The translations under genes were made by a program, and so were the position numbers. From Octopus bimaculoides (lineage: Eukaryota), in the NCBI RefSeq assembly GCF_001194135.2, contig NC_068984.1, positions 69,565,162 through 69,605,128 on the forward strand: DNA of 39,967 bases. The letters run 5' to 3'. Each line of letters starts with the position of its first letter. The first letter of the stretch is position 1. Under the pieces are notes generated by a model, which was not told where the DNA came from, did no database searches, and worked only from the letters and a program-made list of their open reading frames with translations. Shown here in pieces: positions 2,429 through 31,375 of this stretch.

Positions 2429-3423
2429 TCAATTAAAATAAGGGTTTACTAAGACCATTAAGGAACAAAAGCTAGAGATAAGTAAAAGCATAAATAATGA
2501 AGATGATGATGATGATGATGCGGTCAGGGTGCAGTGTTGAAAGGAGAAAATTAAATAAACATTAGTGTGAGGACCCTGCAATAGTGAATGTAGAGATCTG
2601 CTAAGGGGAAAGCAGAAGTCAGTAGCAATAAAACTCAAGTGTTTGTTGGGTTATTGGTAAAGATAATGATTCTTCATTCAAATGACTTGAGCCTAAAATT
2701 GGGTTTAGGAAAAGAAAGATGAGGAAAAGTAGGGAAAGAGAAAGGGAGAGAAACTATTCAGACATACATCCAAACATTTAGCAATGACCCTAAACCTAAA
2801 TAATGGAAGGAAAAGGTGAAAAAAATCATTGTTTATAAAAACAAGTGGGCCAATAAATAAATAGCTAAATAAATAAATTCGATGAAAATAAATTAGAATA
2901 AGGCTTAATTAAAAATTCCAATTAAGTATCAGAGTGAAAGTGTATTAAGAGAATAAATAGCTTGCTGCGAGGTGGTTCATGTGTTAGTTAAATCTACTGT
3001 GTCATAATGATAGAGAGTAGAATATGCTACCACTTGAATAGTTGAAAGAAGGTGATTTAAGAGGCCATAGTGAGATGAAATTGAAAGTAGTTTATGCTAG
3101 TCCAAAACAAGTACCTCATTGACTGCTGTTAGTTAATGGAAGAAAGGGAAATGTAATAATGCTGGAATACAATTATATAACTTAGAAATCCATAAAATAA
3201 GAAGCTGATACCCGATGCAGTCAGAAATAAACAGAGCTATACAAGGAGAGTAGTTGCTAACGAGTTAATTCTACCAAATGTAGAGGAAAATCACAAGCAA
3301 GCATTCAAGAATAAGGATAAAGGAACCCAAAATTTAGGGTAAAGGAACACAAAAAAAAAGAAAAGAAAAGGATAACGGAATGAGGAAGTACAGGTGTGGA
3401 ATCTTCCAAATACATCTATAAGG

Positions 3424-3809
3424 TTATTGTTGGCACTCCGTCGCTTACGACGTCGACGGTTCCAGTTGATCCGATCAACGGAACAGCCTGCTCGTGAAAA
3501 TAACGTGCAAGTGGCTGAGCACTCCACAGACACGTGTACCCTTAACGCAGTTCTCGGGGATATTCAACGTGACACAGTGTGACAAGGCTGGCCCTTTGAA
3601 TTACAGGCACAACAGAAACAGGAAGTAAGAGTGAGAGAAAGTTGTGGTGAAAGAGTACAGCAGGGCTCGCCACCATCCCCTGCCAGAGCGTTGTGAAGCT
3701 TTAGGTGTTTTTGCTCAATAAACACTCACAACGCCCGGTCTGGGAATCGAAACCGCGATCCTATGACCGTGAGTCCGCTGCCCTAACCACTGGACCATTG
3801 CGCCTCCAC
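3424..3809 (-). mobile_element. SINE family C (tRNA-derived head), near full length, with TSD
   Basis: The minus-strand head gtggaggcgcaatggtccagtggttagggcagcggactc...ggtttcgattcc has Pol III A/B boxes. Near-identical to 11480-11863. Flanked by tacatctataagg (3411-3423) and tccatctgtaagg (3810-3822), 11/13 identical. Confidence 0.9.
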
Positions 3810-8253: not shown

Positions 8254-8990
8254 AATCATGATGTCATAGGAGAGAAATGTGTCCACATGAACGATGACTC
8301 ACTTGTATTTAATGAGGATGCAAAGAGAGAGAGTCTTGGAGACAACACTATGAAAGGTTGCTAAATCAAGAGAATGAATGGGAGAAAGAGAGTCTGCCAA
8401 ATGTCAACCCAACAGAGGGACCAGCTATCCAAATTGACAGTACCTTGGTAGATAAATCAATTAAAGGTATGAAGATAGGGAAATACCCCAGCCCATCAGG
8501 AATCACTGCAGAGATGCTTAAAATATCTGGTGGTGTTGGCTATAGTCTAGTCACCTGTATAGTCAATCAGGTGATACATGAAGGAGTCATACCCAATGAC
8601 TGGTGTCGCAGCACCATAGTCAGCTGCTACGAAGATAAAAGTGATGCATTAGATATGAATAATTACAAAAGTATCAAGCTGTTGGATCAGGTAGTGAAAG
8701 TCACGGAGAGGGTCATAGCCCTACTAATTAGGGAGAGAGTCAGTTTAGATGAGATGCAGTTTGGGTTTGTGCCAGCGAAAAGCACCACTGATACTATACA
8801 TCTAGTAAGACAGCTGCAGGATAAATACCAAGCCAAAGATAAATCTCTGTGCCTGGCTTTCATTGACATGGAGAAAGCCTTTGACAGGGTCCCCTGATCC
8901 CTTATCTGGTGATCTATGTGGAAACTAGGGATAGATGAGTGGTTAGTGAGAGCTTTACAATCCAAGTACAGGGATGCTGTCAGTAATGTG
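8254..8990 (+). mobile_element. RTE-clade non-LTR retrotransposon fragment (linker plus N-terminal half of reverse transcriptase), frameshifted and with stops
   Basis: DVIGEKCV...LNQENEW...GKYPSPSGITAEMLK...IPNDWCRSTIVSCY...NNYKSIKLL...EMQFGFVPAKSTTDTIHLVRQLQDKY...LAFIDMEKAFDRVP, continuing past a stop as LIW*SMWKLGIDEWLVRALQSKY. These are typical RTE RT motifs. Confidence 0.95.
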
Positions 8991-12139: not shown

Positions 12140-12517
12140 GAGGAGACCCATCAAGCCAAGTGAAATCATAGTCATGGCTGATACAGTGGCACGTAAAATG
12201 CACCGTTTGAGCATTGGGCCCTCACAGTGGCAATGTGGCCAATGCCAGTGTCACATAACTGGTATCTGTGCTGGTGACACATAAAAAGCACCATTTGAGC
12301 ATTGAGACAATGTGGATGATGCTGATGTCAGGTATGCCAGTGGAACATAAAAGCACCCTTAACACTCTCGGAGTGGTTGGTGCTAGGAAGGGCATCCAGC
12401 CACAGAAACCATACCAAATCAGACAGAAGTTTGGTGCAGCCTTTTAGCTTGTCAACCTTGGCCAAACCATCCAACCCATACCAGCATGGACCATGGACGT
12501 TAAATGATGATGATGAT
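12140..12517 (+). mobile_element. Retroposon family F, diverged subfamily, with internal degenerate repeats and (GAT)n tail
   Basis: Contains ggtgctaggaagggcatccagcc...ccaacccataccagcatgg...cgttaaatgatgatgat. Three degenerate cac(g/a)taaaa(n)gcacc units lie upstream. Confidence 0.75.
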
Positions 12518-18412: not shown

Positions 18413-18531
18413 TAGGAAGGGCATCAAGCTGTAGAAACTCTGCCAAAACATAATGGAGCCTGGTTCACCAGTCCTCAGTCAAATCGTCCAACCCATGCTA
18501 GCATGGAAAGCGGACGTCAAACGATGGTGAT
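18413..18531 (+). mobile_element. Retroposon family F, 3' tail only
   Basis: taggaagggcatcaagctgtagaaactctgccaaa...cagtcctcagtcaaatcgtccaacccatgctagcatggaaagcggacgt. Confidence 0.85.
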
Positions 18532-23228: not shown

Positions 23229-23393
23229 TATACGACAGATTTCTTTCAGCTTCTGTCTACCAAATCCACTCACAAGGGTTTGGTCGGCCTGAAGCTATAG
23301 TAGAAGACACTTGCCCAAGATATGCCACTCAGAGGAACTGAACCCAGAACCACATGGTTTGGAAGCAATCTTCTTACCACACAGTTATGCCTG
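23082..23393 (-). mobile_element. SINE family B, with internal (TA)n and a deletion in the tail
   Basis: Reverse complement of 21159-21490: ctaccaaatccactcacaagg...gctatagtagaagacacttgcccaag...tcttaccacacag. Confidence 0.85.
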
Positions 23394-23409
23394 ATATATA
23401 TATATATAT

Positions 23410-23796
23410 GAGATAGTTGCCAGTGCCCCTGAACTGGCTCTTGTGCGGGTGGCACATAAGATGTACCATCCTGAGCGTGACCATTGCCAGTATCGCCTGA
23501 CTAGCCTTGTAGGGTTTTCGAGCGAGATCGTTGCCAGTGCCCCTGGACTGGCTCTTGTGCGGGTGGCACATAAAAGACACCATTTCGAGTGTGGCCGTTT
23601 TCATGCGGGTGACACGTAAAAGCACCCACTACACTCTCTAGTGGTTGGCGTTAGGAAGGGCATCCAGCTGTAGAAACTCTGCTAAATTAGATTGGAGCCT
23701 GGTGTAGCCATCCGGTTGCACCAGTCCTCGGTCAAATTGTCCAACCCATGCTAGCATGGAAAGCGGACGTTAAACGATGATGATGATGATGATGAT
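23410..23796 (+). mobile_element. Retroposon family F, with partial tandem units and (GAT)n tail, inserted in (TA)n
   Basis: Repeated gttgccagt...actggc...gtgcgggtg(g/a)cac units are followed by the common tail ggcgttaggaagggcatccagctgtagaaactctg...gacgttaaacgatgatgat. Confidence 0.9.
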
Positions 23797-27242: not shown

Positions 27243-27420
27243 AGGTGTTAGGAAGGGCATCCAACCATAGAAACCATGCCAAAACAGATAGGGAGGCTGA
27301 ACAGCCCTTCAGCTGGTCAGCTCCTGTCAAACCATCCAGCCCATACCAGCTTAGAAAACTGACGTTAAATGATTGTGATGATAATGGTGACGCCGCCGAT
27401 GATGATGATGATGATGATAT
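27243..27420 (+). mobile_element. Retroposon family F, diverged 3' tail
   Basis: gttaggaagggcatccaaccatagaaaccatgccaaaacaga...gacgttaaatgat, followed by (GAT)n. Confidence 0.75.
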
Positions 27421-27827: not shown

Positions 27828-27877
27828 TATATATGCATGGGTAATAGACATATTCAGCATTTATTATTTACTTTAAG

Positions 27878-28349
27878 TCCTAAATACATCCAGTTTCTGA
27901 AGGACAATTTGATACCAGACTTGGATGAAGGTGAAATTTTGCAGCATGACAGAGCACCATGCCACAGATCACATGCAACACAGCAGAGTCTGGCTGATGA
28001 AGGTGTTACCGTATTGAAATATTGGCCAGCTCAGAGCTCTGACTTAAATATCACTGAGCAAATTTGGACAGATCTAAAAATAAAAGTTCTTGAAGAGTTG
28101 TGGGAGCTCAGCCATGGAGAATGGCATCTCACGCCTGTGGAGATTGTGAAGGATTTGTATGCATCCCTTTTCAGGTGCACTGAAGCAATTATTCAAGATA
28201 TGGCAAGCCACATGAAATATTTACAATGCACAGTAACTTCTTGAAATTAATATTATGTAATAAATTTTCATTATAGACATTTTTCTGTTTTAAAACACTG
28301 TATCATGATTGGGTGATGTGAGGTGGCCAGAAACTTTTGCACAGCCATT
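27878..28349 (+). mobile_element. Tc1-like DNA transposon remnant: C-terminal DDE domain plus probable right TIR
   Basis: ILQHDRAPCH...WPAQSSDLNITEQIW...LYASLFRCTEAII matches Tc1 FQQDNAPxH / WPxQSPDLNPIExxW. The end gtggccagaaacttttgcacagc (28323-28345) resembles a Tc1 TIR. Confidence 0.92.
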
Positions 28350-28654
28350 TTTGTTGGTTGTCTTGCATTTTCCCCTCTCATTCAGAACCCCTACTACAAA
28401 GTATAATGATTAGGTATGGAAATGACTCCAACAGGGATAATGTTCCATCTGTAAAAAACGCAATGTGAAACAAGCTCTTACAAGTTGGCAATTAGTAGAA
28501 ATTTACAATAGTTTAAAGTGGCTGAAGACTTTAGCACAGTACTGTATATATATTTGTTGCATTTACATATTTATTTTACTTTTACTTTTATTGATTTGTT
28601 CATTTATTTATTTGTTTAATTATTTATTGTATTTTATTTTAAAAATAGATACAC

Positions 28655-28894
28655 ATAAAATACACCATTTTGAGCGTGGCCGTTGCCAGTACCGCCTGAC
28701 TGGCCTTCATGCGGGTGACACGTAAAAGCACCCACTACACTCTCTGAGTGGTTGGCGTTAGGAAGGGCATCCAGCTGTAGAAACTCTGCCAAATCAGATT
28801 GGAGCCTGGTGTTGCCATCCGGTTTCACCAGTCCTCAGTCAAATCGTCCAACACATGCTAGCATGGAAAGTGGACGTTAAATGATGATGATGAT
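28655..28894 (+). mobile_element. Retroposon family F, 5'-truncated within the last repeat unit
   Basis: One hairpin/pseudoknot unit, then the tail and (GAT)n. Candidate TSD gatacac at 28648-28654 and 28895-28901, partly overlapping the tail repeat. Confidence 0.9.
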
Positions 28895-29142
28895 GATACA
28901 CTGTATTCCTACGTATCATAATGGTGTCTAGATGATTTGGTGGCATGAAGTGTATCTGTTCATGAAACTCTGCATCAGGAAACCCATTCCACATATGCCA
29001 GCATGGGGAAGCCTATTTAATAGAAGGAAAACAAGGAAAATGAAGTAAGGAGGATGAAAATGGGATGAGGAGTGTAAGAGAATATTGATGGTGATAATGA
29101 TGATGTTAATGGAGTTTCAATAATTTTTTTTAGTATTATCAT

Positions 29143-30407: not shown

Positions 30408-30764
30408 NNNNNNNNNNNNNNNNNNNNNNNNNNNNNNNNNNNNNNNNNNNNNNNNNNNNNNNNNNNNNNNNNNNNNNNNNNNNNNNNNNNNNNNNNNNNN
30501 NNNNNNNNNNNNNNNNNNNNNNNNNNNNNNNNNNNNNNNNNNNNNNNNNNNNNNNNNNNNNNNNNNNNNNNNNNNNNNNNNNNNNNNNNNNNNNNNNNNN
30601 NNNNNNNNNNNNNNNNNNNNNNNNNNNNNNNNNNNNNNNNNNNNNNNNNNNNNNNNNNNNNNNNNNNNNNNNNNNNNNNNNNNNNNNNNNNNNNNNNNNN
30701 NNNNNNNNNNNNNNNNNNNNNNNNNNNNNNNNNNNNNNNNNNNNNNNNNNNNNNNNNNNNNNNN
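30408..30764. other. Assembly gap (N run) directly upstream of the tandem array
   Basis: Run of N; it may hide further ~62-bp units. Confidence 1.
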
Positions 30765-31219
30765 ATGTGCGGGCGACACATGAAATCTTTCGAGCGGGAT
30801 TGTTGCCGGTGCCCCTGGGCTGGCTCTTGTGCGGATGACACATGAGGGTTTTCGAGCGAGATCGTTGCCAGTGCCCCTGGACTGGCTCTTGTGCGGGTGA
30901 CACATGAAATTTCTTCAAGCGAGATCGTTGCCGGTGCCCCTGGACTGGCTCTTGTGCGGGTGACAGATGAGGTTTCTTGAGCGAGATGAGCGTGGCCGTT
31001 GCCAGTACCACCTGACTGGCCTTCGTGCGGGTGACACGTAAAAGCACCCACTACACTCTCTGAGTGGTTGGCGTTAGGAAGGGCATCCAGCTGTAGAAAC
31101 TCTGCCAAATCAGATTGGAGCCTGGTGTAGCCATCTGTTTTCACCAGTCCTCAGTCAAATCGTCCAACCCATGCTAGCATGGAAAGCAGATGTTAAACGA
31201 CGACGACGACGACGACGAT
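30765..31219 (+). mobile_element. Retroposon family F with a tandem array of ~62-bp units and a (GAC)n tail
   Basis: The tgtgcgg/cgtgcgg motif recurs at 30766, 30828, 30890, 30953 and 31024. The common F tail follows and ends aaacgacgacgac. Confidence 0.92.
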
Positions 31220-31375
31220 ACATATATACACACATATATACACACATATGTACATATATATATATATATATATATACAAGCATACATATACTTACATACA
31301 CATATACATATATATATATATACACATATATATATACACACATATATATATACATACACACATATATACATACAT

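Follow-up and report, generated by a model that had tools for sequence, protein, structure and literature searches.

Octopus genomes consist to a large extent of short interspersed elements (SINEs). In the long interspersed element (LINE) L1 of mouse and rat, an autonomous element, the 5′ monomers (A, Tf, and Gf) are ~200 bp long and have demonstrated RNA polymerase II promoter activity. V-SINEs or Vhc SINEs, which include the DANA type of fish and RUDI, Vhc_1, and Vhc_2 of molluscs, carry a highly conserved 39-bp V ("Vhc") block that is predicted to form a stem-loop and is found in SINEs of fish, bivalves, gastropods, arthropods, and cnidarians; V-domain SINEs have already been reported from molluscs (PMC4758252, PMC5804259). 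The LP-SINEs of bivalves and gastropods have no tRNA head, a tandem-repeat tail, and a presumed noncanonical promoter, and their 5′ promoter region is LINE-derived and of non-tRNA origin (PMC4758252). In titles that PMC4758252 and PMC3531059 cite, the three classical octopus SINEs OK, OR1, and OR2 are described as tRNA-derived. Here we analyze a tandem array that begins at position 30766 of a 40-kb window of the Octopus bimaculoides genome (the whole stretch of 39,967 nucleotides; contig NC_068984.1, positions 69,565,162 to 69,605,128 of the forward strand). We consider it likely that the array represents the monomers at the 5′ end of a single copy of an abundant ~430-nt Octopus SINE-like retroposon without long terminal repeats (a non-LTR element) and with L1-like monomers. 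The tRNA derivation described for OK, OR1, and OR2 makes them probably other elements than this family.

The octopus family is like the V-SINEs in its SINE size and perhaps in its central block, and like LINE-dependent SINEs in having a 3′ hairpin and short tandem repeats at its end. It differs from V-SINEs in that neither a tRNA head nor an A or B box was detected in it, their place being taken by a variable array of 62- to 68-nt monomers. LP-SINEs likewise lack a tRNA head, end in a tandem-repeat tail, and have a presumed noncanonical promoter. The octopus monomers resemble those of L1 in being tandem, variable in number, rich in GC and CpG, and closed by a truncated last unit at the junction with the element; L1 monomer number varies through 5′ truncation and unequal exchange, and number varies likewise between copies of the octopus family. 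The scale differs, ~200 bp in an autonomous element with a demonstrated promoter against ~62 nt in a nonautonomous ~430-nt element with a putative one. Expansion of an internal retroposon piece, as seen here, is also known from the variable number tandem repeat of SVA, from SINE-derived satellites (PMC10702118), and from a Nin-SINE-derived satellite of limpets (PMC11121367), but the octopus family has a basal set of ~3 monomers by design and not only as a local after-effect.

A monomer array in an octopus retroposon family

Tandem Repeats Finder detects a 62-nt repeat at 30766–30987 (period 62, 3.6 copies, 85% matches, score 323), and unit starts read off the sequence fall at 30766, 30828, 30890, and 30953, with a last partial unit from 31024. 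A preliminary reading of the DNA, hereafter the original prediction, had described a multimerized ~62-bp unit with these five starts and a hairpin in each unit, as well as a retroposon family with a microsatellite tail (its "family F"), of which the stretch is the 5′ part; all of this is borne out, multimerization to at least 3.6 copies. The onset of the array lies one base past an assembly gap of 357 N (30408–30764), which conceals the element's 5′ end together with any additional monomers, so that the unit number is a lower bound. Units U1 (30766–30827, 62 nt), U2 (30828–30889, 62 nt), U3 (30890–30952, 63 nt), and U4 (30953–31023, 71 nt) lie on the + strand, and each contains the hairpin GCC(A/G)GT-N8-(A/G)CTGGC, at 30805–30824, 30867–30886, 30930–30949, and 31001–31020, respectively. 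U1 is of a type that occurs elsewhere as the penultimate monomer, and U1 to U3 share the form ..CACATGAAATTTTTCGAGCGAGATCGTTGCCAGTGCCCCTGGACTGGCTCT, from which the GCACCA block that follows TAAAA in other monomers is absent. The last 45 nt of U2 are 100% identical by BLASTN to a monomer of the same type at 23511–23555 in a sister copy. U4 is a hybrid whose 5′ part is like U1 to U3 and whose 3′ part (gagcgtggccgttGCCAGTaccacctgACTGGCctt) is of the last-full-monomer type of the copy at 28 kb.

The array is followed on the + strand by the terminal partial monomer CGTGCGGGTGACACGTAAAAGCACCC (31024–31049), which forms the junction between monomer region and body, by a 147-nt body (31050–31196) that is 94–95% identical to the bodies at 23604–23777 and 28710–28884, and by a microsatellite tail, (ACG)7.3, that reads as (GAC)6GAT (31197–31218). 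The terminal 26-mer recurs, as had been predicted, at 23602–23627 and 28708–28733 with CGTG changed to CATG. The (GAC)6GAT tail is unique to this copy, the others ending in (GAT)n, which fits a tail regenerated as the reverse transcriptase slipped on a variant template, and does so better than point mutation.

Six copies of the family were found in the window by BLASTN, all on the + strand. The copy at 30766–31218 has two sister copies, one at 23410–23796 with ~3.5 monomers of two alternating types, a CATG terminal unit, and (AT)n on both sides, and a 5′-truncated one at 28660–28897 with about one monomer (~1.4) followed by a CATG terminal unit. An older subfamily is represented at 12170–12516, where the body is ~75% identical and ~2.5 monomers carry a GGCAC(G/A)TAAAA(A)GCACC block, and two further copies have no monomers, a 5′-truncated one running from the V-like core through the tail (18413–18531) and an old 5′-truncated one (27244–27420). 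Approximately 25 further copies were found in five 20-kb loci (100 kb) of Octopus vulgaris, which were chosen via proteins matching an antisense open frame of the element. Every truncated copy, in the window and in the O. vulgaris loci, retains the 3′ end, as target-primed reverse transcription is expected to leave it; the + strand is therefore the sense strand, and copying of the LINE type, primed at the 3′ end, is indicated. The element is short (<~700 nt), noncoding, and dispersed (~430 nt; six copies in 40 kb and ~25 in 100 kb), with 5′ truncation and a LINE-type 3′ end in which a tail of GAT or GAC repeats accompanies the CCATGCTAGCATGG palindrome, in all of which it agrees with SINEs.

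Alignment of the longest O. vulgaris copies gives a full-length element of ~430 nt, laid out as a short leader, (AAATCG)n..TCAACATCAATGGAATTTGTAG..GGTACCAGTGCC, tandem 62- to 68-nt monomers, and a body that contains a V-domain-like core, after which come a 3′ hairpin and, as the tail, (GAT)n. Typically, three full monomers are followed by a partial fourth that passes straight into the body (GGTGGCACGTAAAAAGCACC directly followed by CACTACACTCACGGAGTGGTTGGCGTTAGGAAGGGCATCCAGCTGTAGAAACACTGCCAGATC); this last partial monomer is the "terminal unit," and it is present in 18 of 18 copies that reach the junction. The final ~80 nt close with ..CCAACCCATGCTAGCATGGAAAGCGGACGTTAAACGATGAT, and the 3′ end of the element is CCAACCCATGCTAGCATGGAAAGCGGACGTTAAACGATGATGAT. 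Monomers with shared blocks occur in every copy that extends far enough 5′. Their number ranges from 0 to 12.4, with none in truncated copies, ~3.5 in most O. vulgaris copies, and at least 4.6 in the copy at 30766, where at least four monomers of the penultimate type stand in place of a single one. The tandem array is thus nothing unusual for this abundant retroposon of octopuses.

The upper end of the range is an array in O. vulgaris (locus L022, 16163–16933, minus strand) of 62 nt × 12.4 with 94% matches. It contains two alternating variants in a 124-nt higher-order pattern and stands directly 5′ of a normal body and tail. In a second O. vulgaris locus (L021, 3682–4496), a 137 nt × 5.9 array with 97% matches consists of the 3′ half of the element including the tail and looks like a SINE-derived minisatellite. 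With the array in the window, these make tandem expansion of element pieces a recurrent event (3 in ~31 copies).

Alignment of 34 distinct monomers from both species shows five blocks that are at least 90% conserved (GCCAG, CTGGC, GTGC, GGTGGCAC, and TAAAA), the first four of which are the arms of two palindromes per monomer, GCCAG-N6-11-CTGGC (palindrome B) and GTGCC-GGT-GGCAC (arms GTGC..GGTGGCAC). The loop of palindrome B is 6–11 nt long and variable in sequence, and its helix is extended differently according to monomer type (GCCAGT/ACTGGC, GCCAGA/TCTGGC, TGCCAG/CTGGCA, or AAGCCAG/CTGGCTT), a pattern that would look, to judge from the aligned letters, like that of a selected hairpin or of a loosely spaced pair of half-sites. 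There are few true double changes, and the covariation score was reached by 30 of 500 shuffles, which for related sequences is not significant. The hairpin of the original prediction therefore stands as a real and conserved feature of the family, while its existence as an RNA structure is not proven. As features of the family, hairpin palindrome and tandem repetition alike exceed chance by a wide margin.

Within the body, a V-domain-like core lies at 31073–31115 (GTTAGGAAGGGCATCCAGCTGTAGAAAC..TGCCAAATCAGAT, + strand), with the block GTTAGGAAGGGCATCCAGC..TGCCAAATCA, which may correspond to the V-domain core known from DANA and other fish V-SINEs. Its identity to a fish SINE-like element is 88.6% over 44 nt, a value that comes from one match, on contig JBOFZK010000057.1 (L017). 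This 1.5-kb contig, labeled as a Metamycoplasmataceae metagenome-assembled genome (MAG), contains a fish-type V-SINE-like core followed by a LINE endonuclease-like open reading frame (ORF); its DNA is probably that of the host, a fish, placed in a bacterial MAG during binning. At 31169–31182 (+ strand), just upstream of the tail, is the 3′ palindrome CCATGCTAGCATGG, CCATGC-NN-GCATGG, whose arms are kept while its two central nucleotides vary between copies (TA, AA, TT, or CA). The position directly before the tail is the usual site of the hairpin recognized by a stringent LINE reverse transcriptase, and from its sequence and place, the palindrome is likely to be such a recognition hairpin. The monomer palindrome GTGCC-GGT-GGCACGTA recalls what is presumably the GTGCC-T-GGCACATAG palindrome of the L2/MIR 3′ end, a resemblance to be taken as a lead only. 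The original prediction had seen in gcacgtaaaa an echo of Deu/Nin-type central domains; what the body has instead is the V-domain-like core.

Origin of the monomers and of their number

How the monomer region of such a retroposon would change can be outlined. Monomer number would shift via unequal exchange or slippage between monomers, either in source copies or after insertion, and these changes would probably be aided by the two GC-rich palindromes that each monomer contains. Copying would proceed from the 3′ end by a LINE reverse transcriptase, most likely through recognition of the 3′ hairpin and the tail repeats rather than of the 5′ units. The likeliest role of the monomers themselves, by analogy with those of mouse L1, would be that of a 5′ promoter or regulatory module whose dose follows their number. 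This promoter role is the weakest step; what suggests it is that the monomers lie on the 5′ side, stand in tandem, vary in dose, and are high in GC and CpG for a genome of 35% GC.

Besides that step, several points weigh against the retroposon interpretation or limit it. The sample amounts to ~31 copies in 140 kb. The 5′ boundary of the family is blurred, some copies reaching AGACCTGTTGAGGCAAG, which lies upstream of the (AAATCG)n leader. Consistent target-site duplications were not found in the copies examined, many of the insertions being inside (TA)n or (CA)n microsatellites. A partner LINE was sought among the large ORFs beside the O. vulgaris copies, which proved to be two C2H2 zinc-finger genes and one frame with no Pfam match. 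Finally, U1 to U3 differ from each other at 6–10 of ~61 positions (10–16%; 20 of 22 differences are transitions), against 4–5% between the bodies of the three young copies in the window. That divergence rules out a very recent local event; in units so rich in CpG, it is compatible with an origin of the additional units either in a source copy or subsequent to insertion.

The best surviving alternative, to which we would allow a real but minor chance, is that the array is a local, functionless minisatellite, a GC-rich palindromic piece of a dead SINE copy expanded by slippage after insertion. Parts of the element do form local arrays elsewhere, as the O. vulgaris arrays with 12.4 units (94%, two-variant pattern) and 5.9 units (97%) show. 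However, a multi-monomer 5′ region is present in essentially all long copies, in two species and several subfamilies, so that the repeat structure was inherited through source copies; the excess of unit divergence over that of the sister bodies also argues against a local expansion, as does the retention of the palindrome arms across old monomer types.

A stronger version of the retroposon interpretation can be built by analogy with L1. The monomers would constitute a tRNA-independent, dose-variable promoter array of a SINE-sized V-domain retroposon, a miniature counterpart of the L1 monomers that was possibly captured from a LINE 5′ untranslated region, with the twin palindromes as its functional core; the palindromes would then act as factor-binding sites or as RNA hairpins. 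We regard this proposal as tentative and, taken as a whole, doubtful.

The sequence of the 5′ region was also searched for a polymerase III (pol III) head. ARAGORN found no tRNA in the window or in the five O. vulgaris loci with default and -ps settings, and the matches obtained with -ps80 were scattered and inconsistent, falling in differing places and on both strands. The Rfam models of tRNA, 5S, and 7SL gave no match at E ≤ 10 in 30765–31220 or in a full-length O. vulgaris copy, and the best A-box and B-box scores were no better than those of shuffled sequences (p = 0.4–1.0). The family thus shows neither the tRNA-, 5S-, or 7SL-derived head with a pol III promoter that a strict definition of SINEs calls for nor the tRNA-related 5′ region of V-SINEs. 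These results bear on the possibility that the monomers are degenerate tRNA-derived units of a multimeric tRNA SINE, each with TAGCCAGTGCC, within palindrome B, as its pol III A box and with CCATCCGAACG as its B box. The monomer length of 62–68 nt is near that of a tRNA, palindrome B is like a D arm and GTGCC-GGT-GGCAC like an anticodon-type arm, and the GTGGTACCAGTGCC of the leader recalls an A box, a likeness read from the sequence and useful as a lead only. With the tRNA searches empty or inconsistent and the box scores equal to those of shuffles, we judge a tRNA origin of the monomers improbable.

The crossing-stem geometry of the terminal unit

The original prediction centered on the terminal unit, in which it saw a functional compact H-type pseudoknot, multimerized as a cassette and serving in reverse transcriptase recognition, 3′ protection, translational recoding, or self-cleavage. 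Two crossing stems with feasible loop lengths can indeed be drawn on paper, at 31024–31049 only, which reads CGTG-C-GGGTG-A-CACG-TAAAAG-CACCC, and stems of 4 and 5 bp with loops of 1, 1, and 6 nt are sterically possible. The amplified units lack the CACC(C) partner that is the 3′ arm of stem 2, so that the paper pseudoknot occurs once and is not an amplified cassette; stem 1 is, in addition, broken in U4 (CAGA). That the upstream units are without this partner had been correctly stated in the original prediction, and the absence is an old trait of their monomer type. The amplified type without GCACCA is the penultimate monomer in two O. vulgaris copies (L020_10111 and L020_11243; ..GTAAAAAGATTCAAGCGAGGTCATTGCCAGT..) and at 23511–23555, and its presence in O. 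vulgaris and in the sister copy shows that the loss of the CACCC partner is old and did not come about by decay inside the array.

Comparison of copies points in the same direction. In both sister copies, CATG introduces an A·C mismatch into stem 1. The commoner form of the terminal unit in O. vulgaris, CGTGCC-GGT-GGCACG, forms a hairpin of 6 bp without mismatch around a loop of 3 nt (−8.6 kcal/mol), which takes up the bases of stem 2 in its own helix and leaves no room for that stem. The terminal unit of the window is a derived form of this hairpin, in which a C-to-G and a G-to-A change, present in the window subfamily, shorten the helix to 4 bp and generate GGGTG; the pseudoknot geometry would then have arisen incidentally, through two substitutions in a hairpin that was decaying. 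An analogous arrangement, TGTG/CACA with TGGTG/CACCA, can be drawn in the older copy at 12267.

An alignment of 18 junction copies of the family was used for the covariation check. The top pair of stem 2, and with it the full stem, forms in 6 of the 18, and the remaining four pairs (GGTG/CACC) hardly vary, which makes them uninformative in either direction. Only in the outermost pair of stem 1 have both partners changed (CG in six copies, UG in six, and UA in five); because both sides are CpG sites, the double change from CG to UA is attributed to CpG decay. The observed percentage of paired positions was matched by 193 of 500 shuffles and the covariation score by 117 of 500, and the two stems are thus not jointly conserved or covarying as the pseudoknot model had anticipated. 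Measured against dinucleotide shuffles, fold z-scores ranged from −1.5 to +0.55 in individual units and junctions and stood at +1.86 in the complete element, so that folding energy is no better than that of shuffled sequence. The two stems have an estimated stacking energy of approximately −15.5 kcal/mol before any pseudoknot penalty, a value obtained from stem energies, and the nested fold has −6.8 kcal/mol; by this estimate, the pseudoknot would be about as stable as its nested alternative, possible and not favored. A scan for the same type of geometry (4 + 5 Watson–Crick pairs, loops of 1–2, 0–1, and 3–8 nt) gives a chance rate of ~8 per 40-kb strand in shuffled sequence, which makes a single match in a scanned window unremarkable, although within the 295-nt stretch alone the chance expectation is 0.03 and just 2.7% of shuffles contain such a motif.

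The predicted functions find no support in the sequence. The whole window at gathering score gave no Rfam match, and nothing relevant appeared at E ≤ 10 in 30765–31220 or in a full-length O. vulgaris copy; there is thus no match to a ribozyme, pseudoknot, or small-RNA family of the kind that self-cleavage would have implied. Stop codons interrupt all three + frames across 30766–31218, and no XXXYYYZ slippery heptamer precedes the motif (the bases there are gactggcctt), which leaves frameshifting or readthrough without the surroundings it needs and a translational role unsupported. A module that sits ~170 nt away from the 3′ end, in an element that has a separate conserved hairpin, CCATGC-NN-GCATGG, directly before its tail, is unlikely to act in reverse transcriptase recognition or 3′ protection. 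The likeness to viral H-type pseudoknots and to the ribozymes at the 5′ ends of retrotransposons (hepatitis delta virus-like and hammerhead) is confined to the paper geometry of 31024–31049, and the octopus motif differs from them in having no ORF, slippery-site or stop-codon context, no fold conservation, and no Rfam ribozyme match. We conclude that a pseudoknot does not characterize the family, and we consider a functional, multimerized one very improbable. Least credible of all is that the array is an assembly artefact of mis-joined or collapsed reads, for although it starts one base past the gap, its units differ from each other at 6–10 positions and the same monomer types are found in independent copies and in another species, which confines the uncertainty to the unit count.

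Neighboring sequences and significance for octopus retroposons

The window is AT-rich (~35% GC) with abundant microsatellites, and many family copies are bordered by (TA)n or (CA)n runs, which suggests an insertion preference for microsatellites. The two-sided chance that all six copies between 12170 and 31218 share the + strand is ~0.03, and this may reflect orientation selection within an intron of a gene. Directly upstream of several copies stands a tRNA-like octopus SINE of another kind in reversed orientation (23240–23400 in the window; also in loci L021 and L023). An RVT_1 fragment at 8358–8897 (+ strand; Pfam, E = 1e-8) was rejected as the partner LINE, its 3′ end being unlike the SINE tail. 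A Tc1/mariner-like DDE_3 transposase fragment at 27837–28244 (+ strand; E = 2e-9) likewise has a 3′ end unlike the SINE tail. At the start of the window, two 216-nt stretches (1–216 and 479–694; repeat family D20), 478 nt apart, are 100% identical, which may mean that the stretch was duplicated very recently or that the assembly is at fault.

The antisense strand of the element contains long open frames, one of which, used as a protein query, matched only proteins of O. bimaculoides (90–95% identity) and O. vulgaris, a result that by itself identifies the window as Octopus DNA. Octopus proteins annotated as "C2H2-type domain-containing" or "hypothetical predicted protein" (P0001–P0007) thus include translated antisense copies of the retroposon, which are either exonized repeats or gene-model artefacts. 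In locus L022 (~2690–3790, minus strand), a 12-nt direct repeat, TATTATTTGAGG, is found directly after the tail and again 895 nt upstream of the start of the body, and the ~1.07 kb between the repeats contains part of another SINE; this may be a 5′ transduction or a composite retrocopy. A weaker case is a 9-nt repeat, ACACTGTAT, around ~28295–28897 of the window. Older relatives in locus L024 (18170–18310 and 18650–18740, minus strand) combine a GGCACGTAAAAAGCACC block and the V-like core with another 3′ part, which suggests module shuffling among SINE families.

Searches of the literature with sequence strings of the family returned no match or unrelated primers only. Exact-pattern scans retrieved no octopus DNA: metagenomes gave one chance 19-mer (L001), viral contigs one chance match, and prokaryote genomes 17 matches, approximately the number expected by chance except for the fish-like contaminant contig JBOFZK010000057.1. 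The family may already be catalogued in Repbase or Dfam.

There is no evidence at 30766–31218 for a new structured RNA, recoding signal, or ribozyme. What the family does unite is a V-domain-like core that animal phyla have in common, the absence of a detectable head for pol III, and a variable 5′ monomer array with two conserved palindromes per monomer. Its monomer arrays would feed minisatellite variation and assembly gaps such as that at 30408–30764. If the monomers are a promoter, the family would illustrate how transcription of a short retroposon can do without a tRNA head, and if they are the dose-variable promoter array proposed above, an unusual class of nonautonomous retroposon would lie behind part of the SINE expansion in octopus genomes.

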